Assembly (NCBI GenBank): GCA_002269645.1
Contig: NIVC01001020.1
Coordinates: 314,839 to 378,838 of the forward strand
Source: Macrostomum lignano
Taxonomy: Eukaryota
Direction of reading: 5' to 3'
Length of the DNA stretch: 64,000 nt
Positions within the stretch are counted from its first letter, which is position 1; every line of letters starts with the position of its first letter. The notes under the pieces are model-generated. The model had not been told where the DNA came from. It ran no database searches and worked only from the letters and a program-made list of their open reading frames with translations. Shown piece by piece: positions 4,339-62,570 of this stretch. The translations under genes and the position numbers were made by a program.

Positions 4339-7330
4339 TCAGAATGCGTCAAGTTCTGGAGACATGAAGGACGTCTCACATTCGGTGTCTGAAAGGCGAA
4401 AAAGTTTCTGAAGTTTTTGGCTTCTTATCTGGCCTACATATAAATTGGCCTTAGGCTAACATTTGCCTCAAAAATTGCGCATTAAATTCTCTAGTATCCT
4501 ACTTATAGTAAGCGATATTGATTTTATTCTAATTTTTGTACACGTCGCATCGCGTCTTACACTGAACCTCCTTGCCGGGATTCACTTCGTATTTCGACGG
4601 TTTTTTAAGTCGTTCCAACAGAGTCCGGCGAATCACGGCGGCGAACACCAGCCCGACGCTGACGAGCAAAGCGCTAGTCAGAATGATGCCGATCCGAGAG
4701 AAGCTGTCGCCTTGGTAACCGGGGGTGCAATTTTGCTTTAGATGGAAGCTTTTAGTATATAGGACTAGCAATCAGCGCCCCCCGTTGGGAAGCTCACAAA
4801 TAATGGAATATTTTTTGAATAAACTACATGTAGCTTCTAACCTCTCAGCCTTGACATCTCAGCAATTCCCCCGTCAGCCTTGACATCCCAGCTATTCTAC
4901 CCAAGAATCCCATAATTATAGCAATCAATGCACACGCTCACACAGGATGCACAGCAGCCTTGACTTTCCAATCGTCAGGCATGTATCCTGAGATACTTTA
5001 CGCAGACACGCACTGGCACACTTGATCATCGAAGCTCACTGTTGTACTGAAAGCAGGAATTGTCCTCCTTGTCCATCGACTCGTCGCTCAGGTCCGGACA
5101 CTGGGCCAGGCCGTCACAGCTGGCCGGCTTCGGGATGCAGATTCGGCTGCTCCGGCATTTGAAGTCTTCGCAGAGGTGCGCTGTCAGAGAATCAGAGGTT
5201 GCAAGTTGTTCACTGCAACACAAAGAACAAGTAAAAGAACCACGTACCGCCTTCATGCCTCATTCGCTGAGTTTTGCAACAGGGCTCCTGTCTCTACTTC
5301 GAAGTGCATTTACATTAACTCTATTCATATTTTTGTCCTTGTCCGAAGTTCCAGACTTTCACAACACTAAATGCACACAATGATCTTTTCTAACTAGCTG
5401 AGAGGCACAAGTTTCCTGTGCATGAATGAATGAATGAGCCACGACCTTGGCTCAGCTCTCTCTCTCTCTCTCTCTCTCTCAGTCAAAAGGTTTTTGTTTG
5501 TTAAGCAAAATACACCATGGCAATTCGTGCTTTGAACTGAAAGAAAACACAGGTCAGTTACAGGGTAAGACTGCATCCCTGTTTACCCCACTGTCAATCC
5601 CATGTTGAGCTCACTAAGAGTGCACGGCCAGGATCGATTGCAGCTCGCTTTGATGCGAGACTGAGTCCCAATCGATTAGAGACAAAACATGCTCAGGTTT
5701 CACTGAAATCAGGCCGGAATTCTCACTAAATTGCATGTGAGTATATGGCATTAAGTGACAGTGCAAGGTCGCTGCAGGGACTCGGGTTACTGCTCCACTT
5801 TCTCTCCATGGAAACTCAAGTGCACTCGCTCTTCAAGCATGTGTTTCATTCAGTGCCTCACTGCCAAATCAGTGCCTCAGTGCCAAATCAGTGCCTCAGT
5901 GCCAAATCAGTGCCTCAGTGCCAAATCAGTGCCTCAGTGCCAAATCAGTGCCTTAGTGCCAACTCAGTGCCCCACTGCCAAATCAGTGCCTCACTGCCAA
6001 CTCAGTGCCCCACTGCCAAATCAGTGCCTCACTGTCAACTCAGTGCCTCACTGCCAAATCAGTGCCTCACTGCCAACTCAGTGCCCCACTGCCAAATCAG
6101 TGCCTCACTGTCAACTCAGTGTCTCACTGCCAAATCAGTGCCTCACTGTCAACTCAGTGCCTCAGTGCCAAATCAGTGCCTCACTGCCAAATCAGTGCCT
6201 CACTGCCAACTCAGTGCCCCACTGCCAAATCAGTGCCTCAGTGCCAAATCAGTGCCTCAGTGCCAAATCAGTGCCTCACTGCCAAATCAGTGCCTCACTG
6301 TCAACTCAGTGCCTCAGTGCCAAATCAGTGCCTCAGTGCCAAATCAGTGCCTCACTGTCAACTCAGTGCCTCAGTGCCAAATCAGTGCCTCAGTGCCAAA
6401 TCAGTGCCTCAGTGCCAAATCAGTGCCTCACTGCCAAATCAGTGCCTCAGTGCCAAATCAGTGCCTCACTGCCAAATCAGTGCCTCACTGCCAAATCAGT
6501 GCCTCACTGTCAAATCAGTGCCTCACTGTCAAATCAGTGCCTCACTGTAAAATCAGTGCCTCACTGCCAAATCAGTGCCTCACTGCCAAATCAGTGCCAC
6601 ACTGTCAACTCAGTGCCTCACTGCCAAATCAGTGCCTCACTGTCAACTCAGTGCCTCACTGCCAAATCAGTGCCTCACTGCCAAATCAGTGCCTCAGTGC
6701 CAAATCAGTGCCTCACTGCCAAATCAGTGCCTCAGTGCCAAATCAGTGCCTCACTGCCAAATCAGTGCCTCACTGCCAAATCAGTGCCTCACTGCCAAAT
6801 CAGTGCCTCACTGCCAAATCAGTGCCTCACTCCCGCACTTACGCCTGTAAAACGCGGCCGCAGTGAGCAGCAGAGGATCTGCTTTTAGCGAGTTCGAGTG
6901 CTGCTGAAATTCGGCCGGCTCAGCGCTCGGTTCCGCCTGGCTAAGCAGTCTCACGGACAGGCTGGTCTGGAATATCTCCCTCGGCCAGCTGCAGACCGAC
7001 AGCGATTTCTAAGAAATGGTTGGTGAATTCCGGAGCTACTATTTTTAAAGGCCGTCCTGAGAGAAGCTACGGTGCTTTAAAAGAAATGGCTCACATTATT
7101 AACCAGGTCGTCGATTTGGATTGACAGCCGGCACACGAGATGCCTGTTCACGATTCGGAACACGAAGTTTTCCGCGCGCTGGCCGAACTGCGGGTCCGGA
7201 GTTAGCAGCACCGAGCAAGCTGCCGCGTCAGGCTGCGGACCTGCTGACGAAGAGTTCTGCGCCAGCTCGAACGTGACTAATGAGCTTTCTACGGGTAGCC
7301 AGGTACAGTTCTGATGAGGCGTTGTCAGGA
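4339..7330 (-). CDS. Single-pass membrane protein, CUB-like + LDL-receptor class A + TM (5' end uncertain)
   Basis: LDLa exon ~5040-5185 (CEDFKCRSSRICIPKPASCDGLAQCPDLSDE); phase-compatible 44-nt exon 4944-4987; TM exon ending at 4735 (IGIILTSALLVSVGLVFAAVI); probable last exon 4339-4388; upstream exons ~6840-7020 and ~7095-7330 look CUB-like (CSVLLTP...CRLSI; LSVRLLS...LTAAAFY). Confidence 0.55.
5850..6831. repeat. 19-bp minisatellite (TCAGTGCCTCACTGCCAAA), ~52 copies, intronic
   Basis: Directly visible tandem unit with variants (CAGT/CACT, CAAA/CAAC). Confidence 0.97.
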
Positions 7331-11049: not shown

Positions 11050-13700
11050 AAAGGGAGGAGAAGAGAAGAAGAGAGAAAGGAGCGAAGAGGAGAGGAGAGA
11101 CGAGAAGAGAGGAGAAGAGAAGAGAGGAGAAGAGAAGAGAAGAGAAGAGAGGAGAAGGGAAGAGAAGAGAAGAGAAGAGAAGAGAAGAGAGGAGAAGGGA
11201 AGAGAAGAGAAGAGAGGAGAAGGGAAGAGAAGAGAAGAGAAGAGAAGAGAGGAGAAGGGAAGAGAAGAGAAGAGAAAAGAAGAGAAGAGAAGAGAAGAGA
11301 GGAGAAGAGAAGAGAAGAGAAGAGAGGAGAAGAGAAGAGAAGAGAAGAGAAGAGAAGAGAAGAGAAGAGAAGAGAAGAGAAGAGAAGAGAAGAGAGAAGA
11401 GAAGAAGAGAGAAGAAGAGAGAAGAGAGGAGAGAAGAGAAGAGAAAAGAGAAGAGAGAAGAGAAGAGAGGAGAAGGGAAGAGAATAGAAGAGAAGAGAAG
11501 AGAAGAGAGGAGAAGGGAAGAGAAGAGAAGAGAGGAGAAGGGAAGAGAAGAGAAGAGAAGAGAAGAGAGGAGAAGGGAAGAGAAGAGAAGAGAAAAGAAG
11601 AGAAGAGAGGAGAAGGGAAGAGAAGAGAAGAGAAGAGAAGGGAAGAGAAGAGAAGAGAAAAGAAGAGAAGAGAAGAGAAGAGAGGAGAAGAGAAGGGAAG
11701 AGAAGAGAGGAGAAGGGAAGAGAATAGAAGAGAAGAGAAGAGAAGAGAGGAGAAGGGAAGAGAAGAGAAGAGAGGAGAAGGGAAGAGAAGAGAAGAGAAG
11801 AGAAGAGAGGAGAAGGGAAGAGAAGAGAAGAGAAAAGAAGAGAAGAGAAGAGAAGAGAGGAGAAGAGAAGAGAAGAGAAGAGAAGAGAGGAGAAGGGAAG
11901 AGAAGAGAAGAGAGGAGAAGGGAAGAGAAGAGAAGAGAAGAGAAGAGAGGAGAAGGGAAGAGAAGAGAAGAGAAGAGAAGAGAAGAGAAGAGAGGAGAAG
12001 AGAAGAGAAGAGAAGAGAAGAGAAGAGAAGAGAAGAGAAGAGAAGAGAGAAGAGAAGAAGAGAGAAGAAGAGAGAAGAGAAGAGAAAAGAGAAGAGAGAA
12101 GAGAAGAGAGGAGAAGGGAAGAGAAGAGAAGAGAGGAGAAGGGAAGAGAAGAGAAGAGAAGAGAAGAGAAGAGAGGAGAAGGGAAGAGAAGAGAAGAGAG
12201 GAGAAGAGAGGAGAAGGGAAGAGAAGAGAAGAGAGGAGAAGGGAAGAGAAGAGAAGAGAAGAGAAGAGAGGAGAAGGGAAGAGAAGAGAAGAGAGGAGAA
12301 GGGAAGAGAAGAGAAGAGAGGAGAAGGGAAGAGAAGAGAAGAGAAAAGAAGAGAAGAGAAGAGAAGAGAGGAGAAGAGAAGGGAAGAGAAGAGAAGAGAG
12401 GAGAAGGGAAGAGAAGAGAAGAGAAGAGAAGAGAGGAGAAGGGAAGAGAAGAGAAGAGAAAAGAAGAGAAGAGAAGAGAAGAGAGGAGAAGAGAAGAGAA
12501 GAGAAGAGAAGAGAGGAGAAGGGAAGAGAAGAGAAGAGAGGAGAAGAGAAGAGAAGAGAAGAGAAGAGAAGAGAAGAGAAGAGAGGAGAAGGGAAGAGAA
12601 GAGAAGAGAGGAGAAGGGAAGAGAAGAGAAGAGAAGAGAAGAGAGGAGAAGGGAAGAGAAGAGAAGAGAAGAGAAGAGAAGAGAAGAGAGGAGAAGGGAA
12701 GAGAAGAGAAGAGAAGAGAAGAGAGGAGAAGGGAAGAGAAGAGAAGAGAAGAGAAGAGAAGAGAAGAGAGGAGAAGGGAAGAGAAGAGAAGAGAAGAGAA
12801 GAGAAGAGAAGAGAGGAGAAGGGAAGAGAAGAGAAGAGAGGAGAAGGGAAGAGAAGAGAAGAGAAGAGAAGAGAGGAGAAGGGAAGAGAAGAGAAGAGAA
12901 GAGAAGAGAAGAGAAGAGAGGAGAAGGGAAGAGAAGAGAAGAGAAGAGAAGAGAAGAGAGGAGAAGGGAAGAGAAGAGAAGAGAAAAGAAGAGAAGAGAA
13001 GAGAAGAGAGGAGAAGGGAAGAGAAGAGAAGAGAAGAGAAGAGAGGAGAAGGGAAGAGAAGAGAAGAGAAGAGAAGAGAAGAGAGGAGAAGGGAAGAGAA
13101 GAGAAGAGAAGAGAAGAGAGGAGAAGGGAAGAGAAGAGAAGAGAAAAGAAGAGAAGAGAAGAGAAGAGAGGAGAAGAGAAGAGAAGAGAAGAGAAGAGAG
13201 GAGAAGGGAAGAGAAGAGAAGAGAGGAGAAGAGAAGAGAAGAGAAGAGAAGAGAAGAGAAGAGAAGAGAAGAGAAGAGAGGAGAAGGGAAGAGAAGAGAA
13301 GAGAAGAGAAGAGAGGAGAAGGGAAGAGAAGAGAAGAGAAAAGAAGAGAAGAGAAGAGAGGAGAAGAGAAGAGAAGAGAAGAGAAGAGAGGAGAAGGGAA
13401 GAGAAGAGAAGAGAGGAGAAGGGAAGAGAAGAGAAGAGAAGAGAAGAGAGGAGAAGGGAAGAGAAGAGAAGAGAAAAGAAGAGAAGAGAAGAGAAGAGAG
13501 GAGAAGAGAAGGGAAGAGAAGAGAAGAGAGGAGAAGGGAAGAGAAGAGAAGAGAAGAGAAGAGAGGAGAGAAAAGAAGAGAAGAGAGAAGAGAGAAGAGA
13601 AGAAAAGAGAAGAGAAGAGAAGAGAGAAGAGAGGAGAGAAAAGAAGAGAAGAGAGAAAAGAGAAGAGAAGAGAACAGAAGAGAAGAGAAAAAAAGAGAGA
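11050..13700. repeat. (GAGAA)n pentanucleotide satellite with GAGAG/GGGAA/AAGAA variants, ~2.7 kb
   Basis: The plus strand is almost purely purine and variant blocks recur. Confidence 0.99.
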
Positions 13701-14640
13701 AGAGAAGAGAAGCGAGAAAGGAGCGGAGAGGAGAGAGAGGATTTGTCAGAGAAGGAGGTGAAGACAGGAAAGAGGAGAGGAGAGAGGAGATAAATAAGAA
13801 AAGAGCAGAGCAGAGACACAAACCCCGAGTGGGCCAGATTGCTGCTCTGAAGTTTCAAAGGACCCGAGGGCCGCATAGAGAGGCTTCGCGGGCCGGAGTT
13901 TGCCGACTCCCTGACTTTAAAAAATGTTTTTTTTCCCAAAGGCTCGGCACATCTGCTGACTCCCATGGGGGGGGGGGGTTCAGCACACACCTGCGCCATA
14001 GGGATCTAGAACTAGAACCTGGAGTCCCAACTCTTATTGGCCCGGACGCTAGTAGGCTGACTGGGGAAAATTACCCCACATAGCCACATATGCTTTTGCA
14101 TTTGAACAAATCTTTGACTAAGATGCACGCTAAAAACCGAAATCGGATTTTCAAGTATGGAAACGAAACAAATATTGTTTTTTGTATTTAATAGACAATA
14201 AAAGCAGACACTGATTCATATCATTGCATTCAAAGTGTATCATCAAGGCAACAGAATTACGATTTCGGCAATAAAAATGATGGATAAATATGCGTACCTA
14301 TACTATGAGCTAGCTCGTCATTCGACATCATTCAGAATAAAAAATGTGAATTTAAACAGTATAATACGGAAATAATTAATGACTTCAAGCAATATTTAAC
14401 AAGTTATTGTTGTGACAGTGCAACGTGACTCATTCACATGACTGATTGATCGAATAGTTTTGCTCTGACTCTGACATCTAATTGATCGCACAATCAGTGT
14501 TCAGTCAATGACATCTTGATTGACTTTTGACAGTTGAAATTTTGATTCTCAATTTTAGCCAGCTATTAAGCAATGTATAACAGTAAAGAAAGCCGCAGTC
14601 AGCTTCTTGATGTTTCGTTACACAGATAATGCCGACTCCT

Positions 14641-15864: not shown

Positions 15865-16920
15865 AAATGAGTGACCGTGGCGCTAAAGTGAGTGACTGCG
15901 ACGCTAAAATGAGTGAGTTTGGTGCTGAAATGCGTGACAGTGGCGCTAAAATGAGTGACTGTGGCGCTAAAATGAGTGAGTTTGATGCTGAAATGAGTGA
16001 CAGTGACGCTAAAATGAGTGACTGTGGCGCTAAAATGAGTGACAGTGGCGCTAAAATGAGTGACAGTGGCGCTAAAATGAGTGACAGTGGCGCTAAAATG
16101 AGTGAGTTTGATGCTGAAATGAGTGACAGTGGCGCTAAAATGAGTGAGTTTGGTGCTGAAATGAGTGACAGTGGCGCTAAAATGAGTGAGTTTGGTGCTG
16201 AAATGAGTGACAGTGGCGCTAAAATGAGTGAGTTTGGTGCTGAAATGAGTGACAGTGGCGCTAAAATGAGTGAGTTTGGTGCTGAAATGAGTGACAGTGG
16301 CGCTAAAATGAGTGAGTTTGGTGCTGAAATGAGTGACAGTGGCGCTAAAATGAGTGACAGTGGCGCTAAAATGAGTGACAGTGGCGCTAAAATGAGTGAC
16401 AGTGGCGCTAAAATAAGTGACAGTGGCGCTAAAATGAGTGACAGTGGCGCTAAAATGAGTGAGTTTGATGCTGAAATGAGTGACAGTGGCGCTAAAATGA
16501 GTGAGTTTGATGCTGAAATGAGTGACAGTGGCGCTAAAATGAGTGACAGTGGCGCTAAAATGAGTGACAGTGGCGCTAAAATGAGTGAGTTTGATGCTGA
16601 AATGAGTGACTGTGGCGCTAAAATGAGTGACAGTGGCGCTAAAATGAGTGACAGTGGCGCTAAAATGAGTGACAGTGGCGCTAAAATGAGTGACAGTGGT
16701 GCTAAAATGAGTGACAGTGGCGCTAAAATGAGTGAGTTTGGTGCTGAAATGAGTGACAGTGGCGCTAAAATGAGTGACAGTGGCGCTAAAATGAGTGACA
16801 GTGGCGCTAAAATGAGTGACAGTGGCGCTAAAATGAGTGAGTTTGATGCTGAAATGAGTGACAGTGGCGCTAAAATGAGTGAGTTTGATGCTGAAATGAG
16901 TAACTGCAGCGCAAAATGAG
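15865..16920. repeat. 21-bp minisatellite with two unit classes (AAAATGAGTGACAGTGGCGCT / AAAATGAGTGAGTTTG[G/A]TGCT), ~50 copies
   Basis: Directly visible. Confidence 0.97.
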
Positions 16921-17481
16921 TGTGAAGTCGTTGAGTGTAAAGGCATATCAGCCACAGTAACCCAGTTGCAGCCAATCCTCTGTAATTATATTTTATATAA
17001 ATAAATACGGTATATGACTTCTATTCTATCTTGAATCCCATCTCTTTCAAACTTCGCTCGTGCCTCTCCACAGTGGGAACTGGTACAACCCTACTAACCC
17101 TATATTGCGTTCACATTTCACCCACTTGTGCCGCATCCCCTTAGTAGCCTCAGCGGTGGTGCGAGAGCATTCTGTTGCAATCGAAAAGTTCACTTTGTAA
17201 CCTTCCCGGTTTATCATTCGCTTTTACGCAGAAATGCATGGCCACTTGGTTGCAGCAAAAATTATTCTCTTTCAGCGCAATGTTGAACTGCACCTGCGGA
17301 AGCACCTGCGGAATTTGCAATGCCCAGGAAATTCCTTCACGAACTATTCGACGAAAGCTTCGAATAGTGCATGGCTACATTCGGTGTGCAACGTTTTACG
17401 GCAAGTCTGTGTTATTCGGGGAGTAGAAGAAATGTTCGGGGTTGTGCGTTGCAATTTTAATTTGAGGGGATCGCAACCCTG

Positions 17482-18117
17482 AGCGCCCCCTGTCTCTTGG
17501 TTCGCGTTGGCACCCGTCTTTTTTGGTGGGCGCCCCTGTCTCTTGGTTCGCGTTGGCACCCGTCTTTTTTGGTGGGCGCCCCTGTCTCTTGAGTTGGGCG
17601 CCCCTGTCTCCTGAGTTGGGCGCCCCTGTCTCTTGAGTTGGGCGCCCCTGTCTCTTGAGTTGGGCGCCCCTGTCTCTTGAGTTGGGCCCCCCTGTCTCTT
17701 GAGTTGGGCGCCCCTGTCTCTTGAGTTGGGCGCCCCTGTCTCCTGAGTTGGGCGCCCCTGTCTCTTGAGTTGGGCGCCCCTGTCTCTTGAGTTGGGCGCC
17801 CCTGTCTCTTGAGTTGGGCGCCCCTGTCTCTTGAGTTGGGCGCCCCTGTCTCTTGAGTTGGGCGCCCCTGTCTCTTGAGTTGGGCGCCCCTGTCTCTTGA
17901 GTTGGGCGCCCCTGTCTCTTGAGTTGGGCGCCCCTGTCTCTTGAGTTGGGCGCCCCTGTCTCTTGAGTTGGGCGCCCCTGTCTCCTGAGTTGGGCGCCCC
18001 TGTCTCCTGAGTTGGGCGCCCCTGTCTCCTGAGTTGGGCGCCCCTGTCTCCTGAGTTGGGCGCCCCTGTCTCCTGAGTTGGGCGCCCCTGTCTCCTGAGT
18101 TGGGCGCCCCTGTCTCC
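17482..18117. repeat. Two 46-bp units followed by a 22-bp minisatellite (GGGCGCCCCTGTCTC[T/C]TGAGTT), ~25 copies
   Basis: Period of 46 at 17528/17574, then period of 22 to 18117. Confidence 0.96.
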
Positions 18118-25327: not shown

Positions 25328-26027
25328 GGTTGTAGCCTTAGTGCGGAGTTGTAGCCTAGTAGGGGGTTGTAGCCTAGTGGGGGTTGTAGCCTAGTGGGGG
25401 TTGTAGCCTAGTGGGGGTTGTAGCCCAGTGGGGGTTGTAGCCCAGTGGGGGTTGTAGCCTAGTGTGGGTTGTAGCCTAGTGGGGGTTGTAGCCCAGTGGG
25501 GGTTGTAGCCTAGTGGGGGTTGTAGCCCAGTGGGGGTTGTAGACTAGTGGGGGGTTGTAGCCCAGTGGGGGTTGTAGCCTAGTGAGGGGTTGTAGCCTAA
25601 TGGGGGTTGTAGCCTAGTGGGGTTGTAGCCTAGTGGGGGTTGTAGCCTAGTGTGGGTTGTAGCCTAGTGTGGGTTGTAGCCTAGTGTGGGTTGTAGCCTA
25701 GTGGGGTTGTAGCCCAGTGGGGGTTGTAGCCTAGTGTGGGTTGTAGCCTAGTGGGGGTTGTAGCCCAGTGGGGGTTGTAGCCCAGTGGGGGTTGTAGCCC
25801 AGTGGGGGTTGTAGCCTAGTGGGGGTTGTAGCCTAGTGTGGGTTGTAGCCTAGTGGGGGTTGTAGCCCAGTGGGGGTTGTAGCCTAGTGGGGGTTGTAGC
25901 CCAGTGGGGGTTGTAGACTAGTGGGGGTTGTAGCCCAGTGGGGGTTGTAGCCTAGTGGGGGTTGTAGCCTAGTGGGGGTTGTAGCCTAGTGGGGGTTGTA
26001 GCCTAGTGAGGGGTTGTAGCCTAGTGG
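25328..26027 (+). repeat. 17-bp minisatellite (GGGGGTTGTAGCCTAGT), ~40 copies, continuous with SINE 5' end
   Basis: The last unit runs straight into GGTTAGAGCGTGGGACTC of the SINE head. Confidence 0.97.
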
Positions 26028-31782: not shown

Positions 31783-32249
<467 letters not shown>

Positions 32250-34529: not shown

Positions 34530-34544
34530 CTCTCACTCTCTCAC

Positions 34545-34586
<42 letters not shown>

Positions 34587-35090
34587 TCTTTAACTCACTC
34601 TCTCACTCACTCACTCACTCACTCTCTCTCTTTCTCTCTCTCTCACTCACTCACTCTCTCACCCTCACTCCTATATTCTCGCTTTCTCTCTCACTACTCT
34701 CTCTCACTCACTCACTTACTCACTCACTCACTCACTCACTCACTCTCTCACTCACTCACTCACTCACTCTCTCTCTTTCTCTCTCTCTCACTCACTCACT
34801 CTCTCACCCTCACTCCTATATTCTCGCTTTCTCTCTCACTCACTCTCTCTCACTCACTCACTTACTCACTCACTCACTCACTCACTCACTCTCTCACTCA
34901 CTCACTCACTCACTCTCTCACTCACTCACTCACTCACTCACTCACTCTCTCACCCTCACTCCTATATTCTCGCTTTCTCTCTCTCTCACTCTCTCTCACT
35001 CACTCACTCACTCACTCACTCTCTCACTCACTCACTCACTCTCTCACCCTCACTCCTATATTCTCGCTTTCTCTCTCACTTTTAATGCTA
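34530..35090. repeat. Compound (CT)n/(CTCA)n microsatellite with a recurring ~35-bp spacer
   Basis: CTCTCACCCTCACTCCTATATTCTCGCTTTCTCTC recurs four times. Confidence 0.95.
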
Positions 35091-35318
35091 TATTTCTTGA
35101 TCAAAAACTATTTAAGCTCCGATATCAGAAAACCAGTTTTTATTATATAGATATGCTAATCTAATACAGTTATACATAAACAGAAAATTCAAAATTCGGG
35201 GCCCGTATCAGTGGGGGGGGGATAACTGCTATTTGATGAGCGCCCAGCCAATGAGAGTTCTGGAATTTTTGGAAGAGCGATCAATCCACTGCCAAAAATA
35301 AATTTTATGGTAAAAAAT

Positions 35319-35805
35319 CACTGTTTCTTACCCACTGTTTCACCCAATGTTTCACCCACTGTTTCACCCACTGTTTCACCCACTGTTTCACCCACTGTTT
35401 CACCCACTGTTTCACCCACTGTTTCACCCACTGTTTCACCCACTGTTTCACCCACTGTTTCACCCACTGTTTCACCCACTGTTTCACCCACTGTTTCACC
35501 CACTGTTTCACCCACTGTTTCACCCACTGTTTCACCCACTGTTTCACCCACTGCTTCACCCACTGTTTCACCCACTGTTTCACCCACTGCTTCACCCACT
35601 GTTTCACCCACTGCTTCACCCAATGTTTCACCCACTGTTTCACCCACTGTTTCACCCAATGTTTCACCCACTGTTTCACCCACTGTTTCACCCACTGCTT
35701 CACCCAATGTTTCACCCACTGTTTCACCCACTGTTTCACCCACTGCTTCACCCACTGTTTCACCCACTGTTTCACCCAATGTTTCACCCACTGTTTCTCA
35801 CCCAT
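35319..35805. repeat. 12-bp minisatellite (CACCCACTGTTT), ~40 copies
   Basis: Directly visible. Confidence 0.97.
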
Positions 35806-35814
35806 TGTTTCTCG

Positions 35815-36375
35815 GAGAGTGGAGAGAGGGTGAGAGTGGAGAGAGGGTGAGAGTGGAGAGAGGGTGAGAGTGGAGAGAGGGTGAGAGTGGAGAGAGGGTG
35901 AGAGTTGAAAGAGACTGAGAGTAGAGGGTGAGAGTAAAGAGAGGCTGAGAGTTGAAAGAGACTGAGTGAAGAGAGGATGAGAGTGGAGAGAGGGTGAGAG
36001 TTGAAAGAGACTGAGAGTAGAGGCTGAGAGTAAAGAGAGGCTGAGAGTTGAAAGAGACTGAGAGTAGAGGGTGAGAGTGGAGAGAGGGTGAGAGTTGAAA
36101 GAGACTGAGAGTGAAGAGAGGCCGAAAATGGAGAGAGGTTGAGAGTAGCCGTAGAGGGTAAGAGTGGACAGATGCTGAGAGTTGAAAGAGACTGAGTGAA
36201 GAGAGGATGAGAGTGGAGAGAGGGTGAGAGTTGAAAGAGACTGAGAGTAGAGGGTGAGAGTAAAGAGAGGCTGAAAGTGGAGAGAGGCTGAAAGTAAAGA
36301 GAGACTGAAAGTGGAGAGAGGCTGAGAGTGGAGAGAGGGTGAGAGTGGAGGGAGGGTGAGAGAGGAGACAGTGTG
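35815..36375. repeat. Diverged 17-bp purine-rich minisatellite (GAGAGTGGAGAGAGGGT)
   Basis: Directly visible; abuts the 12-bp array. Confidence 0.9.
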
Positions 36376-48931: not shown

Positions 48932-49775
48932 TCACAAGCGAACGGCGAAATCTCCAGCCACGGCCCTCAGCTCGTGCGGCACAGCGGCGAATCTCAGCAG
49001 GTAGCAGGCGTTCAGGTGGAACAGCACGGCCTGGCAGTCGGCATGGCAGCAAATCAGACACAAATTCAGGCTCATCACGGGCTGCACGGTGCGGTAGAAG
49101 GGCCCGCTGGAGGAGGTCATGTTCAGGTAGACTCGATCAGCAAAAGTGAAGTATCCGCTGACTGTTAGGGACAGAGAGAGTTCACAGCAATTCCGGTGAT
49201 ACTGACCCAATGAGCCATCAGAATTCAGTTAGCATTGCACTGTGTGTCGTGACGTGTGACGTGTACGAGCGTATCAAAGTTTAAATCGGCTTTGACGCTA
49301 GCTTGCTCATACTCTGAGTTTACTTTCTCATGACAAATCAATAAATACTGTTAGAACAATTGAACTCACCTGGACGAAGGTAGACCTGCCGGTACACGGA
49401 GTTTCTCCAAGCTGATCCGCAGATTTGGGCAGAGTTGCCGGCGCAGTTCATGTTGCAGTCGCTGTTGGCAGCCTGGCCGTGGATGCCATAGGAGTTTCCG
49501 CAGCGGCATTCGCTTGCATACTGCGCGCCAAAGTACTCAAAGTTTCCATAGGCGCAAATCTCGCTGCACAGTTCCAGAGTCATCTCGCTGAGGTCGACAA
49601 ATGAACCTTTCAGGTGAGACACCGAGTACGGCCCGATGGTGGACCTGCCTTCGAGTCCGCCGAGGTCTCGAGTTTCGGTGTCCACGAAGCAGCCCACCAG
49701 GCCGAATTCGGCGCCCAGCGAGCAGCCGAAAGCGACGCAGCAGCAGAGAAGCGACAGAATTGATGAGGCCTGCAT
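48932..49775 (-). CDS. Secreted WSC-domain + PAN-like protein, intact two-exon gene
   Basis: Exon 1 is 49370-49775 (signal peptide; GCFVD...MTLELCSEIC...FGAQYASECRCG...CNMNCAGN...CG...RNSVY); exon 2 is 48932-49161 (CLICCHADCQAVLFHLNACYLL); phase-1 splice is in frame. Confidence 0.9.
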
Positions 49776-51617: not shown

Positions 51618-53491
51618 CTACTTATTGAGTGACAGCTTGTCAAGGACGAGTCGAAGTTCGTCGCCATCCAGGGTAACGCGTTTCTCAGAGATTATGGTCT
51701 CGATTTGGTGCCTGCAGAATTCCCTGTGTTCCAACGACTGGCTGTAGTGGGCCAGGGTAAGAAGCTCCTCTAAATCCGGGTCTTCTTGCAGTTCAACACG
51801 CCACTCATCAAAAATGTCGATTGGAAGATCTCGTAGAAGCTCAGCTTGGAGACTCCAGCTGAGGCAGCGAAAATTCACGTACAGGTGGGCGGAGCCAGGC
51901 TGCGACAGTCTGGCTTTCAACAGAGTCTGAGTGAACTCAGGGAGGAACGGCAGTCGAGGCGGACTGTCGCAGGGGAGGCAAAACCTCCACGCCCAGTCTT
52001 CCTCAATATCGAAAAAGTCTTTACTCAGAAGGTTTTCAGGCTTCCAACCTCTCTGCACTTGATGCGATTGCAGCTTCTTCAGGAGGATGTCAGCCTGTGC
52101 AGAATCCTTGGATTTCACATACGCCATGACTTTCATGCACAAGACTGCGCATTTACACCACTGAAGCTGATCCAGGATATTAAGCTGTTCCATTAGCTCG
52201 TCCTTGTCAGTTGCTTCTGACTGCAGATCAACCATGCATTGGTTCACCATGCAGTAGACCGCAATGGATGAATCTGCAGGTTGTGTGGCTTGAAAAGGTT
52301 TTTCTACTTTTCTGGTTAGAGGTAGCAAAGTGAACGGGTGAAAGTAGAAGTCCTCCGACTGTAGAGACATCATCTGTTCTTTCATTGCCTCATACACCTG
52401 TCTTATATTGCTTCTAATCTCTCTGAATTGGTCCGAAACTTTTGTCCTTGCGTTGACTAAGTCACCTCCGACTCCAGCATTTTTGAAGTACAACGGAGCG
52501 TCAAGCATGAAGAAGTGCGGCATGCAGACATCAGGCGAGCTGCCGGAAGCAACGAAGCTTAGCATCGTGTCGAGCGATTCATTTAGCAGATCGACCAAGT
52601 TCTCCACCGAATGCCAAACGCTGCTATCTTTGCCTTGCTTCTCCAGCATGAACAGGAGCAAAGTCTTGGCGTGGTAGGTCTTGAGACCTGGTGTTTGCAA
52701 ATTGATGGGCATGTATATCTTAAATATGTATTTCAAGATGACGAAAAGTTGGCCTTGTACTTCGCTTACGCTCTCCAAGATTTCTTTTTCATGGAAGCTG
52801 AAACTCACTCTGAGTTCGTTCGGCGAGTTGGGTCGAGTCGCTCTAACGAGGTGCACTGGGGGCAGATCTCGGTTAGGAAGAAGCTTTGCAATTCGGTCCT
52901 GACAGAAGTCGCTGCAACATTGGATAGCTTCGCAGATGTCTTCTGTGGGTCGAACACCGCTCGCTGGGGTCGTCATCGCCGGCTGGCTGCCTGAAAAGAG
53001 ACAACAACAGTTTATACCTTAGTCGAATTGTTGCCAGGGCTCAGTTAGTACTTTAAATCAGTCTTTGATCTTCGTTGCGGCTTGACTATTAAAGTTGTAA
53101 GGTTTAACAGAGCACAAGCAAGCGTTACTGATAAGCTGGGCAAAACTTACCCGATCCAGCTTGCACCTGAGCGTGGCCTTCTCTAACCTGAAGCAGTGGA
53201 GAATTTTTGCAATTTTCAGACCTTTGGCAGCCTCCTTTCAGGTGAGTTACTTGTCTAGAGTCCATCGTAGTCCAGTCGATGTCGGATTGAGCCCCTACTC
53301 TGCCGTTCACCTGCACGAGACTGTTCCCCCAGCCTTCTCGGTAGCTGCCAGTCATCTGCCTCTGACCATCTGAAGAGCTTTGAACCAGCGTTTGCAGAGT
53401 GCGACCCAGTACTTGCTGACACTTTGCCCTGCGCAGACTGAATCCTGCCTGGGTAAGCTGCTGGTGCCAACTCCGACTTAGCTCTCTGTTT
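51618..53491 (-). CDS. cGAS-like receptor (cGLR/Mab-21 family nucleotidyltransferase), >=570 aa; first exon not located
   Basis: Exon 53151-53491 encodes MTGSYREG-x-SDIDW and splices in frame (phase 1) to exon 51618-52990: EDICEAIQC, HLV...ELRVSFSFHEKEIL, LKYIFK, LKTYHAKTLLL, W, MPHFF (Mab-21 C-lobe). Confidence 0.88.
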
Positions 53492-54957: not shown

Positions 54958-56834
54958 TTAAAAGACGCACCCATTTTGCAGCACCGGAAGCACTTGGTAG
55001 TTATGATATTGATTAGCCAGCTGCTCGCATGTCATGCCTTGGTGATCTTGATGACTTGGGTCTGCTCCTTCGTTTATCAGAACCTTGGCAGATAAAACAT
55101 GGCCCGCTATGCACGCTCGAGACAGAGCCGTCCGACCTTGGCCATCTACAGCCCTCACAGACGCACCGTGAAGCAGCAATTCATTGATGACGTCGTGCTG
55201 ACCCGCATCTGCTGCCAGCATTAAAGCGGTTGCTCCTGTGCTATTCTGCTGATCGACATGCGTGTCGCTATAGTATTGGCTTCTGATTATCGTGAGTGCC
55301 AGTGCGACAAGACTGTGCGTGATGGACAGGCAGAGCAGTTGAGCGATGCGAACGGCATGCATTTTAGACAGCGTATATCGTAAAACTGAATCGTCACCAG
55401 GAATCTCCAGGTGCTGAGAGAGCAGCTTCAGCAGTGGAGAGTTGCGGAGCAGCCAGTCAGCTGGAATGGCTGCCACCGCTTTTCCGTCCGAGCTTGAGGA
55501 ATAAAATCGGAACTGACCCCGACTCCGGCTTTTGAAGCAGTGGACACAAGAAACTCGTTGAGTCTGCGGATATCCATCTTTTCTGCAACAGTCTCCGTCG
55601 CGGACCTCCAGTACTCGTCTTTCAGCAACATGCTGGAAGGAATATACTTGCCGACAGTCGCGACAACATCCCAGTTTTTCGTATCTGCTGCAGCCCCTGC
55701 AGTTATCATGCAGCTACTTTCGAGAATGCTTTGATCGTCAATGATCTCAATGAAAGTTTTCACTTCATTCCATTCGTTTCTGTCTGCAAGGATTTCTACT
55801 GCTTTCAGGCAGCACTGATCCCTCATGTTTTTGTCTTCAATGGTTAGAGCCAGAAAAACCAGATCTTCGCACTGAGCAGATGAATGTGCTAAGTCTGCAA
55901 GCTTCATGCAGCACAGATACCTGCGACTGGGGTCAGCGATCAGCTCAACTAGAGACTTCGCGATATCCCAACTGCCAGATAATACAAAGGATTCAGCAAA
56001 ATCGATGCATTTTTTATCTCTAAGTGCTGGATTAGAAATATTTCTTAAAAGCGAAGTAGCTGCTTCCAAGCAATTGGATGCAGCAGATTGCTCTGCATAG
56101 GAGATGCAGAAAGAATCCCGGCCGTCCGAATCAGAAATCATCTGCCCAAGAGAGGCCACACAGTTCATATTGCCATGGCTGGACGCAGATTCTGCAGCGT
56201 CTATGCAGTATTGATCTTTGAGTTGCCTATCGCGAATTGTACCTGCTAGAAAAATAATGAGTTCATCGTTAAAAAGATCGTTATTTGCAAGTGCAGGAGC
56301 GTCTTCAAAAGTTTCGTCTGTTGTGCCAGCGTTTTCCGAAACGGCCTTTATGTAAGATGAACAGAAGTCATCTCGCAGTTGTTCGTCAGAGATGCTTTGC
56401 ACCAAAAAAGTCACAACATTCCAGTGCTGATTTCCTGCAGCGATCCAGGCTGCTTCCGCACAACAACTATCTTTACTGCTTTTGTCGAAAAAGAATTCCA
56501 TCAGAGCAGCGACAACTTCTCCGTGGCCATTGGCTGCTGCAGCTTTTGTCGCCTCCGTGCAACACTTGTCCGAGCTGTCTCTGTCCGAAATCTTTTGCAA
56601 ATATTTTTCCAGATCTTCTCTTGTACCACTGGCGGCGGCTTTGACTGCATTTTCTGCTGCATTCTTCTCCAAAATATCTTCTATTTTGCTTTCCAGGAAG
56701 TTTCGAGCACGATTGAACATAATTATATGCGTGAAAAACTCACTTGACGCAGTTTTCTTAATTGGCAAGGTATTTCGTTGAAACCATTTATTTGCTGTGA
56801 ATTCGAAGATTATCGTTTGTAATGCTTTAAACAC
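54958..56834 (-). CDS. Ankyrin-like repeat protein: ~9 atypical 33-aa repeats, then 3 canonical ankyrin repeats; the two halves are in different frames
   Basis: ORF 55428-56834 has a 33-aa period (DxCCxxAAxxAAxxGxWxVVxxL); ORF 54958-55476 has GATALMLAA, GRTALSRAC and GMTCEQLA. They overlap at ~55430-55480. Confidence 0.75.
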
Positions 56835-57773: not shown

Positions 57774-59227
57774 TTAAAACGACCGTTTTACTAAATATCA
57801 AGCTTAGTTTGAATAGGGTTATTTTTCTTACTACTCTACTGTAAGTAGGCGTCAACGTAAATGTTATGCAAATAATTAGTATTTTTTGCGTTGCCGAAAT
57901 TATCGATCTTATAATAACTCATGCTTGAATGCAAATATAAGCGCAGCTTACTCGTCTTCCTAAGTGGAGCGCACCTTCCTCGAATTCTTGTTTGGCTAAT
58001 TAATCGCGGCTTTCTGTGTTAGTCTATTGAGACACGACACCACAGCGGGCAGATGGTATAACTCGAGCCCGAAGCGACCGAAAATCACAGTTGATGATGA
58101 GTTCGTTTGCGGTGAATCGAGAACCTTCGATGCAGCGACTCCCAAACCAGTCTGAGGCTGCTTTAGTAACCGAAGTGAACTCGATTTCTTATTTTCCCTT
58201 TCTATGTACTGGTGAGATCGCAGTGTTATTTTGACTGGTGTGGACATCCGGTTACAATACGAGTAATATTAGAACCATATGTTGGTAGGTGAAGCATCCA
58301 TACGGATATTGGAGTAGAAAAAGAACCTGCTCTGAGGTGAAATACTTGCAAGCGTTGTATGTACGTATCCAAATATTTATTGACTAATGACTGTAGGAAC
58401 TGCTTTAAAATAGTGTGTTGCCAAAGAAGATATACATGTAGGTTAATTTTAAGTTTTACTTTTCACCCAATTTAATTGCTTAACCTAATAAACTTCCTTA
58501 ACGCTTTTAAATCTTACTCAGTGTTCTTTTAACCTTTGCATGCAACCTATAACCTATGCATGTAATGTCACATGAAGACAAACTTTCGTTCAACTTTCAA
58601 GTTCAAGTTCAACTTCGAAACTTCTAGCTCTGTACATGTAAATCGACAATCATTTTAGACAAACTCCTTTTAAATATCGACAGACCAGCACAGATTTGCA
58701 TGAAGAAGAAAGCCTATATTTTTTTGGCATTGACAAAACTTCATTTTAGTTTTGTCAGACTCCAACTCATATCGACAATCTGCTGACGCAACTTCTATAA
58801 ACTCGGATTCACTTTCGTCAAAACATTGATTCGTCTAAAATCGTCAATTTACGCTCACTTTAGCCAGGAGAACCTACGAAATGTGCTGGGACCCAAGCAC
58901 AGCTGGAATAAAATAAAATAAAGTTACAAAAAACAAGAAATTCTACTGTTGAGTAAATAAATACTGTGGTAATCTTTTTTTTCAACACCTAAAAACTTAC
59001 ATTAAAAGTTTGAAGTTAAACAATTTTCACAATATTAGATTTAAAATCAAAATATTAATAAATACCGTAATCAGCAAGAGTAATAAGCGAGAAATAGTAG
59101 AAGAATATATATCAGATAATCTCAGCTTTTTACAAATATATTACCATCCTTAAAGTTAGTTTTGACCCAGCAATTTATTGCCAAGGTTCGTCACAGTAGT
59201 GAAGTAGCAATAATAATGAGTCGTAAT

Positions 59228-60887
59228 TTACAGAACTTGACATTCTCTCTTCTTCTTGGTCCTTTTGAGATACTGTTCCTGGAGAGCGCTGACAAGTTCC
59301 GTAGGGAGAGATGCCAGATTTTCCTGCAATTTGAATTTAATTGCTGATTATTACAGCAATGTTGCAACAGTTTCAACCTGTCTAGATTAGTTTGGATTTA
59401 ATTAATTCTTGGAATTAAGCAGTCAACCTTCTATCTACGACCTCTAGGAGCACCAGAGGCGCCAGCACCAGAGGCGCCAGCACCAGAGGCGCCAGCACCA
59501 GAGGCGCCAGCACCAGAGGCGCCAGCACCAGAGGCGCCAGCACCAGAGGCGCCAGCACCAGAGGCGCCAGCACCAGAGGCGCCAGCACCAGAGGCGCCAG
59601 CACCAGAGGCGCCAGCACCAGAGGCGCCAGCACCAGAGGCGCCAGCACCAGAGGCGCCAGCACCAGAGGCGCCAGCACCAGAGGCGCCAGCACCAGAGGC
59701 GCCAGCACCAGAGGCGCCAGCACCAGAGGCGCCAGCACCAGAGGCGCCAGCACCAGAGGCGCCAGCACCAGAGGCGCCAGCACCAGAGGCGCCAGCACCA
59801 GAGGCGCCAGCACCAGAGGCGCCAGCACCAGAGGCGCCAGCACCAGAGGCGCCAGCACCAGAGGCGCCAGCACCAGAGGCGCCAGCACCAGAGGCGCCAG
59901 CACCAGAGGCGCCAGCACCAGAGGCGCCAGCACCAGAGGCGCCAGCACCAGAGGCGCCAGCACCAGAGGCGCCAGCACCAGAGGCGCCAGCACCAGAGGC
60001 GCCAGCACCAGAGGCGCCAGCACCAGAGGCGCCAGCACCAGAGGCGCCAGCACCAGAGGCGCCAGCACCAGAGGCGCCAGCACCAGAGGCGCCAGCACCA
60101 GAGGCGCCAGCACCAGAGGCGCCAGCACCAGAGGCGCCAGCACCTGCAGAATATTTAGAGAATGGCACTCACGTGTGTCAGCGCACTGCATTCAATGTAC
60201 TTGAGAGCTTTAGTCTTCTTAGCCAACTTTTTTCCCTGCTTGAAGGTGACCGGCGCCCTTCCATTCTTTGCCAGTTTCTCAACCACATCCGGGTCTGTCC
60301 TCAAATCTGCCTTGGTGCCAATCAGGACGAATGGAGTACTGCTATTGTAGATGTAACTCGGAGCCTCTCGCAACCACTTGGTTTCCACATTTTCAAATGA
60401 CGCCGGGTCGATCACCGAGAAGCAGATCAGGTAGCCGTCGTAGCTGGGATACGCGGGAGGACGCAATCTGAAGTGGAAAGTAGAAAGTATGCAAAGCAAG
60501 ATGAATTATCATGCAGTGTACAGTCTGATGTACAGCCAAAGACATCGATGAGTGTTGCTGAACTGGCAGCTAACTTATAGTCTATGGCCAGCCCTGCGGA
60601 CCGCTATAAGTGGATTTCTTTCAGGCTTTTAATAATAAGAGGTTTTAAAGTTATATTTTAGCTGATCAGTTGCACTCGATTTACCTGTCGTATTCCAGTG
60701 GCACCGGCAAGTCAATTAATTGCAGAATGAAGTCCTCTGTACCAATTTTTCCTGTGATTTCCTTGGGGTCGCACGTATTCGGCACGTACTCCGATGGAAA
60801 CTGGCTGGTTGCAGAAGTTATGATCAGACTGGTTTTTCCAACGCCCTTGTCGCCGACCACAGAGCATTTACACGTAAAACATTGCAT
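59228..60887 (-). CDS. Atypical Rho-family (Rac/Cdc42-like) small GTPase, 197 aa, three exons, CAAX = CQVL
   Basis: Exons 60685-60887, 60173-60467 and 59228-59323 total 594 nt in frame. GDKGVGKT, TKADLR, Rho insert, CSAL and polybasic KRTKKKRECQVL* are present. Confidence 0.9.
59449..60144. repeat. Perfect 15-bp minisatellite (GGCGCCAGCACCAGA), ~46 copies, in the last Rho intron
   Basis: Directly visible; I saw no variant units. Confidence 0.99.
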
Positions 60888-61028
60888 GTTGGCCTAAAAT
60901 ATTATTGAATTGATTTGTTTGGTCATTTCATGTTTCATTTTTAGTACAATTTGAGTCAGAAAATGCTAAGGGGCCAACGTATCCTGAATAAATTTGATTC
61001 CTGTGCTCCACTTTGGGATACTTAACAG

Positions 61029-62570
61029 CAGAAAGACCACGCTATTTTTCCCCATGGGTAAAGACCACGGGGGTGTATTACAAATACACACGACCCATTT
61101 CACGATATCTCGCAAACAGAATTTTCCAATTTTCGTAAAAGTCCACCATATGGATTAAAATTTTCCGCCCTTTCCGACGAACTAACTTTCAAAGTCATCC
61201 GACGTCAGCATCGTCGAGATATTCAACGATTCTTGTCGAAGACACTGGTGGCAACACTACACTGTATAAACCTTTATGGTGAATCCATATTGGCTCAATA
61301 ATCTGGGTCCATCAGTCGTAGAAGCCTTTGTTCTCAGCATCCTAGACACCAGGGTCTCCTTCATCTCCGTCTGGAGCATCGGCGGCGACCGTCGGGACCT
61401 TCAACGAAAGCACCCGATCGGTACTCAGAGACGGCTGCGTTCCCAAAACTGAAGTGGAAGAATCCTCTTCTGCATGCAGCATTCAGTCAGTAGACACAAT
61501 CGGTGAATGAAATGGACGATGGCGACCCTCTAGGCTGACCTGTAGACATACAGGCGACCTTCGGGACCTTCAACGGAGTGCCACCACGCGGCCCCGACGA
61601 GCTGGAACCGCTAACATCGTGATTTTTCTATCAAAGCACCAAACCAGGCTTGTCTGCATATTATACAATGGTTCTGCACCATGTTAAATCGGAGAGTTAC
61701 CGATTTCATTGGCGACAGAAAAATATAAAACCGCTTTCTCTTTGTCTATGGCCAAGAGGTGCCAAGCAGTTGCTCAGAATGAGGAGCAAATGCTCCGCAT
61801 TTGAGAAATTTCTTTATTCATATGAACATTGAGCAACTGCTCCAGATCAGAGCAGTTGCTCGAGTTTAAGCTCTTGCTCAATCTCAGAGTTTGAGGTGAA
61901 ACTCGCCAGTTATTGCTCACTTTATTCAAATGGCCAATAGACACAAAAGCGGAGTCAATTGTCACTATTTAATTTGGTGTACAACGTGCGCAGTACTGGT
62001 GGGGGTGCCAGCTCGTCGGGGCGCGTGTGGACTCCGTTGAAGGTCCCGAAGGTCGCCTGTATGTCTACAGGTCAGCCTAGAGGGTCGCCGTCGTCCATTT
62101 CATTCACCGATTATGTCTAATGTTTGAATGCTGCATGCAGAAGAGGATTCTTCCATTTCAGTTTTGGGAACGCAGCCGTCTCTTAGACACCGATCGGGTG
62201 CTTTCGTTGAAGGTCCCGACGGTCGCCGCCGATGCTACAGACGGAGATGAAGGAGACCCTGGTGTCTAGGATGCTGAGAACAAAGGCTTCTACGACTGAT
62301 ATGCATAGTTTGTCGAGCCGACGTGGTTTCATGATGAGATTTTTTGAACAGAAAAATTTTGCCAATGTTGGTGGTTTTTGCCACCTGACACCCGAGGAGA
62401 ATCGTTGAATATCTCGACGATGCCGATTTTTTGTGATTCTCGAAGTTGCTCCATCGAATAGAGTGGAAAATTTTTGCCCGTGTTCGGGATTTTCATGGCA
62501 ATTGGTTGAATATTTTCGGAGATACAGACAAAGGAAAATGTGTGTATTTGAAATACACCCCATGGTCTTT
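61029..62570. mobile_element. Foldback element with nested inverted repeats, ~1.5 kb
   Basis: Arms 61311-61609 and 62004-62300 (~300 bp, highly similar); outer matches AAAGACCA[C/T]GGGGTGTATT and CGTCGAGATATTCAACGATTC; inner inverted pair at ~61731/61950. Confidence 0.8.

Follow-up and report, generated by a model that had tools for sequence, protein, structure and literature searches.

What remains of a Rho-family GTPase that has lost both its hydrolysis residues and its γ-phosphate sensors, but has kept the motifs of the nucleotide pocket and the lipid anchor motif? This question is raised by a gene on the minus strand at positions 59228-60887 of a 64,000-nucleotide stretch of the Macrostomum lignano genome (GenBank assembly GCA_002269645.1, contig NIVC01001020.1, positions 314,839 to 378,838 of the forward strand; the whole stretch is called the window, and all positions given below refer to it). 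Rnd and RhoH proteins lose the hydrolysis residues but keep the γ-phosphate sensors; the product of this gene lacks both sets. A first-pass annotation, made from the sequence alone, had called it a candidate pseudo-GTPase, and the loss of Thr35 in the G2 motif and of Gly60 and Gln61 in the G3 motif, with G1, G4 and G5 intact, supports this description. The gene is a strongly diverged paralogue of cdc42 and not a Cdc42 orthologue. With slightly better than even confidence, its product would be a functional, M. lignano-restricted pseudoGTPase of the class ii type, which is prenylated and binds nucleotide but does not switch.

Gene structure and descent from cdc42

Assembly of the exons gives an intact three-exon Rho-family gene with a coding sequence of 203 + 295 + 96 = 594 nt. 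It encodes 197 amino acids (197 codons plus stop) with no internal stops, and both introns have GT-AG borders. The reassembled gene agrees exactly with the coordinates and the clean three-exon open reading frame (ORF) of the first-pass annotation. The features of the locus are as follows, where a slash marks a splice junction.

60887-60685, minus strand: coding exon 1, 203 nt, residues 1-68, with the ATG at 60887 and the donor AG/GTAAAT; it contains the P-loop GDKGVGKT, the degenerate switch I YVPNTCDPK, DLPVP in place of DTAGQ, and EYDR.
60684-60468, minus strand: intron 1, 217 nt, phase 2, GT-AG.
60467-60173, minus strand: coding exon 2, 295 nt, residues 68-166, with the acceptor TTCAG/ and the donor CAC/GTGAGT; it contains LRPPAYP, TKAD (G4), the Rho insert and CSAL (G5).
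60172-59324, minus strand: intron 2, 849 nt, phase 0, GT-AG; the frame of exon 2 stops 18 nt past the donor.
59323-59228, minus strand: coding exon 3, 96 nt including TAA, with the acceptor TTGCAG/; it contains the C-terminal helix, the polybasic KRTKKKRE and the CaaX box CQVL.
59449-60144, no strand assigned: perfect tandem repeat, 15 bp x 46.4 copies, unit AGCACCAGAGGCGCC, 100% matches, occupying most of intron 2.
59174-59179, minus strand: polyadenylation-signal-like AATAAA, starting 49 nt past the stop codon.
60894-60899, minus strand: acceptor-like TTTTAG in the context TTTTAG/GCCAAC-ATG, ending 6 nt before the ATG; candidate acceptor for spliced-leader (SL) trans-splicing or for a 5′-untranslated region.

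Exon 1 is a 100% match in tblastn, and the frame of exon 2 belongs to an ORF at 60155-60499 that ends at a stop within intron 2. The AGCACCAGAGGCGCC repeat in this intron can be read without stops in two minus-strand frames, as (GAGAS)n and (LAPLV)n. It was considered as a coding exon and ruled out, because exon 2 is out of frame with the repeat ORFs; such an exon is also contradicted by the models of three M. lignano paralogues in UniProt, which skip the repeat. That the array is perfect implies that it expanded or was homogenised very recently.

Upstream of the ATG, the TAG of TTTTAG is an in-frame stop that bounds the ORF. The UniProt paralogue models begin with ANMQC, that is, at the exact TTTTAG/GCCAAC junction, and a start at this acceptor would fit a transcript-derived, possibly trans-spliced, model without proving it. 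The spliced leader of M. lignano is 35 nt long and ends in ATG (PMC8629364). If the transcript were trans-spliced, the ATG of the leader would be in frame, and translation from it would give M-A-N-M-Q-C..., adding three residues to the genomic ORF. The 64-kb window gave no match in Rfam or SL-RNA searches.

The parent of this gene is Cdc42 and not, as the first-pass annotation had assumed, Rac, since the best solved match is to Cdc42 chains (180 bits) versus at most 157 bits for Rac chains, and the signatures PSEYVP and EKLAKN are of the Cdc42 type. The product shares 48.7% identity with the canonical M. lignano Cdc42 and 49.7% with human Cdc42, whereas these two are 83% identical to each other. 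M. lignano also has canonical Cdc42 genes, one of which, BOX15_Mlig011286g1 (NIVC01002161.1), has three coding exons; its first intron, in phase 2, follows ...YD(R), and its second, in phase 0, follows SALTQ. The two introns of the diverged gene lie in the homologous codons and in the same phases (SALTH versus SALTQ at intron 2). This retention of both introns shows that the gene arose from cdc42 by duplication at the DNA level and not as a retrocopy. Shared non-consensus residues carried no signal for the timing of the duplication: four are shared with M. lignano Cdc42, and up to seven with the Cdc42 of other species.

Motifs, divergence and distribution of the protein

The product matches the Pfam Ras family PF00071 at residues 7-180 (E=1.2e-29) and human Cdc42 structures at residues 5-195 (E=3e-52), and its membership in the Rho family is far beyond chance. 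Substitutions were read from alignments to human and M. lignano Cdc42 and are given in Rac/Cdc42 numbering. Gly12 is replaced by Lys, so that the P-loop reads GDKGVGKT. Thr35 of G2 is replaced by Asn in YVPN, and residues 57-61 have changed from DTAGQ to DLPVP (T58L, A59P, G60V and Q61P), which leaves G3 without its glycine. Each of these substitutions had been listed by the first-pass annotation, and the alignments verify them. They likewise bear out its list of retained elements, namely GxxxxGKT, TKxD, SAL, the Rho insert, the polybasic tail and CQVL. Its statement that every hydrolysis and switch residue is replaced holds for G12, T35, G60 and Q61, but Y32, P34, D38, D57 and Y64-D65-R66-L67-R68-P69 are still present. 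G1 is intact (K16 and T17), F28 is retained, and G4 and G5 are kept as TKAD and SAL. Among the hallmarks of the Rho family, the five G motifs are thus represented by intact G1, G4 and G5 and degraded G2 and G3, and the Ras-superfamily G-domain fold, the Rho insert helix (~122-135) and the polybasic tail with CaaX are all found. The insert, DLRTDPDVVEKLAKNG, aligns to the Cdc42 insert without gaps and retains 3/3 near-invariant columns. The C-terminus consists of the polybasic tail KRTKKKRE and the CaaX box CQVL. A CaaX box with Leu at the last position directs geranylgeranylation by geranylgeranyltransferase I (GGTase-I), and CQVL together with the polybasic tail predicts a geranylgeranylated, membrane-associated protein.

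The divergence reaches far beyond the catalytic residues. Among 124 alignment columns that are at least 90% conserved in 66 Cdc42 sequences, the protein retains 73 and changes 51 (41%). The changed columns are distributed as 2/8 in the P-loop, 7/15 in switch I, 4/5 in DTAGQ, 6/15 in the rest of switch II and 31/72 elsewhere, and residues 57-76 account for changes in 10 of 20 conserved columns. The near-invariant residues that are lost include T35N, V36T, F37C, Y40K and F56I as well as N39, and, outside the switches, H103 and H104. Switch I and G3 together show no significant excess of changes (Fisher p=0.22). The first-pass annotation had assumed that catalytic residues were lost selectively from a conserved chassis; this was rejected, since changes occur throughout the chain. 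Nor is the rest of the chain kept, with identity to Cdc42 of only ~49-50%.

AlphaFold2 (AF2), run on a 70-sequence alignment, predicts a G-domain fold with a mean predicted local distance difference test score (pLDDT) of 73 and a predicted template modelling score (pTM) of 0.73. The C-terminal half is confident, including insert helices predicted at 121-125 and 127-135, and Foldseek places the model on Cdc42/Rac structures with template modelling (TM) scores of 0.73-0.81. The pLDDT falls below 50 at residues 25-39 (switch I) and is low in switch II. This score was rejected as an indicator of whether the switches are intact: a model of the canonical M. lignano Cdc42 built from the same alignment is equally low in both switches, so the low values say nothing specific about the diverged protein.

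Relatives were sought by a word-indexed search of 5.8 billion proteins and an exhaustive HMMER scan of 1.84 billion representatives. Out of ~15 billion proteins in total, the sole close relatives are three M. lignano entries in UniProt, A0A1I8G5Q0, A0A1I8H664 and A0A1I8J975, which are 97-98% identical to the window copy, 199 amino acids long, intact in their ORFs, and all equipped with K12, N35 and DLPVP. Differences from the window copy are limited to positions 22, 55, 138, 147 and 148, none of which lies in a G motif. They carry the automatic name 'Ras-related C3 botulinum toxin substrate 1' ('Rac1'). The exact protein of the window is absent from the protein collection searched. The existence of several copies at 97-98% identity is accounted for by the hidden polyploidy of M. 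lignano, whose genome contains many near-identical duplicated regions and scaffolds (PMC8629364, PMC10468722). Above ~52% identity, both searches found only the M. lignano cluster, and the next matches are ordinary Cdc42s. No literature account was found of this gene or of degenerate Cdc42 paralogues in Macrostomum.

Among 251 Rho-like alignments drawn from both searches, G12, T35, G60 and Q61 are all kept in 185 and all changed in 12. Three of these 12 form the M. lignano cluster, and the others occur in Araneus ventricosus, Anaeramoeba ignava, Heterostelium and Mycena. The latter are 38-39% identical to the M. lignano protein, have other replacement residues and often retain the CaaX box. 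In the A. ventricosus 'Cdc42' (GBM15138.1), the G3 segment reads DTVTF, switch I is rebuilt and the CaaX box is kept; the A. ignava protein (KAJ5069578.1) has E12, K35 and DTISN. Like the M. lignano protein, both are ~200 amino acids long and keep the P-loop and CaaX while replacing G12, T35, G60 and Q61, but they come from unrelated lineages, represent independent events and not orthologues, and are uncharacterised. K12 and N35 also occur in the Astyanax mexicanus 'RhoG' (A0A8B9LBT8), where DTAGQ is unchanged.

A proposed non-switching pseudoGTPase and its alternatives

The protein falls under the pseudoGTPase definition of Stiegler and Boggon (PMC5593906), judged by its sequence, with the fold present and G2 and G3 degraded. 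PseudoGTPases comprise proteins that bind no nucleotide (class i), those that bind nucleotide without catalysis, such as Rnd (class ii), and those with divergent motifs and retained catalysis, such as RGK (class iii) (PMC5593906). In the 'loaded spring', the γ-phosphate is sensed by two residues, Thr35 and Gly60 (PMC2651530). Either of the single mutations T35S and G60A is enough to move GTP-bound H-Ras into state 1, with drastic impairment of effector affinity and GTPase activity (PMC4867591), and substitutions of G12 render Rnd and RhoH non-cycling (PMC13236570). The M. lignano protein most likely still binds guanine nucleotide, because the P-loop, K16/T17, F28, D57, TKxD and SAL are intact, and the loss of Thr35, Gly60, the catalytic Gln61 and the permissive Gly12 would leave it with neither a canonical loaded-spring switch nor hydrolysis assisted by GTPase-activating proteins (GAPs). 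The membrane-anchored, non-cycling protein proposed by the first-pass annotation is a reasonable reading of CQVL, the polybasic tail and the precedent of H-Ras T35S and G60A. Such a protein would have arisen when cdc42 was duplicated at the DNA level with its introns and then diverged to ~50% identity. Its geranylgeranylated, polybasic-tailed G domain would be targeted to membranes, the nucleotide would act as a structural cofactor, and output would depend on expression level and localisation, not on GAPs or guanine nucleotide exchange factors (GEFs). The picture of a nucleotide-loaded but uncoupled protein would suit it better than that of a 'constitutively active' one such as Rnd.

Several points weigh against a functional pseudoGTPase. 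The divergence is protein-wide and even includes a proline in the C-terminal helix (F169P), which fits relaxed constraint too; no orthologue outside M. lignano was found in either protein library; and the NCBI (BOX15) annotation of GCA_002269645.1 includes canonical cdc42 genes but not this one. Moreover, HAS-GTPases, which have a hydrophobic residue at the position of Gln61, are still able to hydrolyse GTP. So are RGK proteins (PMC5593906). The changes spread over 51 of 124 columns, the lack of orthologues and the missing annotation also favour a redundant cdc42 duplicate, transcribed or not, that drifts without function under relaxed selection in a recently polyploid genome and is becoming a pseudogene, and the many duplicated scaffolds of this hidden polyploid point in the same direction (PMC8629364, PMC10468722). 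Such a decaying duplicate is nevertheless rather unlikely. The window copy has an undamaged ORF, ATG, stop and set of four splice sites, and the three UniProt copies have intact ORFs. When the canonical cdc42 coding sequence was mutated at random (kappa=2, substitutions only) to 50% amino acid identity, which took ~209 substitutions, an open frame with ATG survived in only 88 of 20000 runs (0.44%), with indels and splice-site loss uncounted. The GC content at third codon positions is 0.58, well above the GC content of the gene's own introns (0.40 and 0.35), and is 0.71 in the parent cdc42. All motifs that contact the guanine base or the α/β-phosphates survive together with the CaaX box, although 41% of the conserved columns have changed. 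Comparison with canonical cdc42 gives a dN of 0.43 and an overall dN/dS below 1 (0.17-0.29, with dS saturated at 1.5-2.6). Because nearly all of dN falls on the branch of the diverged gene, dN/dS on this branch is probably ~0.3-0.5 as a rough figure, and the branch is probably relaxed but not neutral. Long neutral decay is thus unlikely, and this indirect evidence favours a live gene, as do the AATAAA past the stop codon and the acceptor-like TTTTAG at the start of the UniProt models.

If the gene is live, its product might instead be a working non-canonical GTPase of class iii, similar to RGK or HAS-GTPases, in which Lys12 or a residue from a partner supports hydrolysis and which is still a regulated switch. 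This would agree with intact G1, G4, G5, T17 and D57, with the basic Lys12, which would adjoin the γ-phosphate site, and with RGK proteins, which diverge at G2 and G3 (DXWE) and yet are classed as catalytic (PMC5593906, PMC4081519). However, this alternative is unlikely, since both sensors, T35 and G60, are gone, prolines stand on either side of position 60 in DLPVP, T35S or G60A singly already cripples the GTPase activity of H-Ras (PMC4867591), and an alternative catalytic residue is not identifiable from sequence.

The first-pass annotation had also suggested a decoy or sink, either for GEFs or the Rho guanine nucleotide dissociation inhibitor (RhoGDI), as an endogenous dominant negative, or for Rho-modifying bacterial toxins. 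G60A Ras, which offers a precedent, is reportedly a dominant negative (Ford et al. 2005), and it acts by sequestering the GEF. The switch II segment Y64-P69 and the geranylgeranyl CaaX box required for GDI binding are also retained. On the other hand, the residues read by DH-GEFs (those with a Dbl-homology domain), CRIB effectors and GDI are changed (T35, V36, F37, N39, Y40, F56, Q61, H103 and H104). A decoy needs a partner-binding surface, which is largely rewritten here, given the numbers of conserved columns changed in switch I and at residues 57-76, and enzymes that modify T35 and Q61 cannot use a protein without these residues as a substrate. In addition, the genomic context shows no link to immunity, and the host is a free-living marine flatworm. 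The decoy idea is thus without support and highly improbable. A related possibility is that the Cdc42 duplicate acts as a switch-less prenylated regulator of the Cdc42 module, as a competitor for RhoGDI or membrane sites or as a lineage-specific scaffold. It would compete via the retained lipid tail and the Y64-P69 segment and would be 'dominant-negative-like', going beyond Rnd and RhoH in the loss of both γ-phosphate sensors. Such a role appears quite improbable.

Surroundings and place among atypical GTPases

The window around the gene is rich in repeats. An inverted repeat at 61280-61579 and 62031-62331, with arms of ~300 nt that are complementary in two segments (91% and 96%) and a spacer of ~450 nt, starts ~400 bp upstream of the ATG and may be a foldback element. 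The ORFs on both of its arms share VVEAFVLSILDTRVSFISV.SIGGDRRDLQRKHPIG, for which Pfam gave no match. The largest tandem array of the window, (GAGAA) x 531 at 11058-13712, accounts for the extremes of GC and AT skew between 10 and 14 kb. Further long arrays lie at 5850-6831, 15865-16922, 17527-18116, 25328-26027, 31783-32249 and 34532-36368, and periods range over 3-47 bp, at 25-156 copies each.

Further coding regions were noted on the minus strand. An uninterrupted 452-amino-acid ORF at 51618-52976 contains a Mab-21 HhH/H2TH-like domain, and ANK-repeat ORFs at 54958-56834 lie directly upstream of it on the same strand. The best annotated M. lignano match to the Mab-21 ORF shares only 58% identity with it, and the exact protein of this ORF is not on record; its significant matches are all M. 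lignano Mab-21/ANK proteins (550-770 amino acids) and one metagenome protein. These ORFs look like an unannotated member of a lineage-specific family expansion. A homologue search with the ANK neighbour gave no match, and the loci of three annotated M. lignano Mab-21-like relatives contain no copy of the Rho gene and no DNA similarity to the window. A 145-amino-acid ORF at 49338-49775 has a signal-peptide-like N-terminus and a WSC carbohydrate-binding domain (Pfam E=1.2e-16), and its exact protein is not on record either.

Cdc42 itself (human CDC42 and BOX15_Mlig011286g1) is the closest known relative of the diverged protein: it is the best match in sequence and fold, and the two share the intron positions and phases, the Rho insert, the polybasic tail and a CaaX box ending in Leu. 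Unlike Cdc42, the diverged protein is without G12, T35, T58, A59, G60, Q61, F37, Y40, F56 and H103/H104. Rnd1-3 and RhoH resemble it as prenylated, non-cycling members of the Rho family, a state reached in them by substitutions equivalent to G12 and Q61 and predicted for the M. lignano protein. Rnd and RhoH, in which substitutions are confined to positions 12, 59 and 61, keep Thr35 and the glycine of DxxG and adopt an active-like, effector-binding GTP conformation. The M. lignano protein does not belong to these groups, since its best matches are Cdc42 and Rac and both Thr35 and Gly60 are replaced; it is a separate Cdc42-derived lineage, which would be state-1-like and uncoupled from the nucleotide. 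Expression and turnover, and not GEFs or GAPs, are believed to determine the output of Rnd and RhoH (PMC13236570, PMC5593906). RGK proteins (Gem, Rad and Rem1/2) resemble the M. lignano protein in their unconserved G2, their departure from DXXG at G3 (DXWE) and their retention of G1, G4 and G5 (PMC4081519, PMC5593906). Unlike it, they are of the Ras branch and are reported to retain hydrolysis. Membership in the RGK group is contradicted by the DLPVP at G3 and by the presence of both the Rho insert and CaaX. RGK proteins lack the Rho insert and CaaX prenylation and have long N- and C-terminal extensions.

Judged in this way, the M. lignano protein appears to be an atypical Rho protein or pseudoGTPase more degenerate than Rnd or RhoH, and a single lineage-restricted, uncharacterised paralogue. 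Degenerate prenylated Rho paralogues arise repeatedly and are uncharacterised, which makes a single case less novel; those of a spider, Anaeramoeba and a slime mould, together with the present one, may constitute a recurrent, undescribed class of 'switch-less' Rho paralogues. If the M. lignano gene is expressed and under selection, it would provide a natural test case for a Rho G domain without any switch, in an animal that is amenable to RNA interference and transgenesis.

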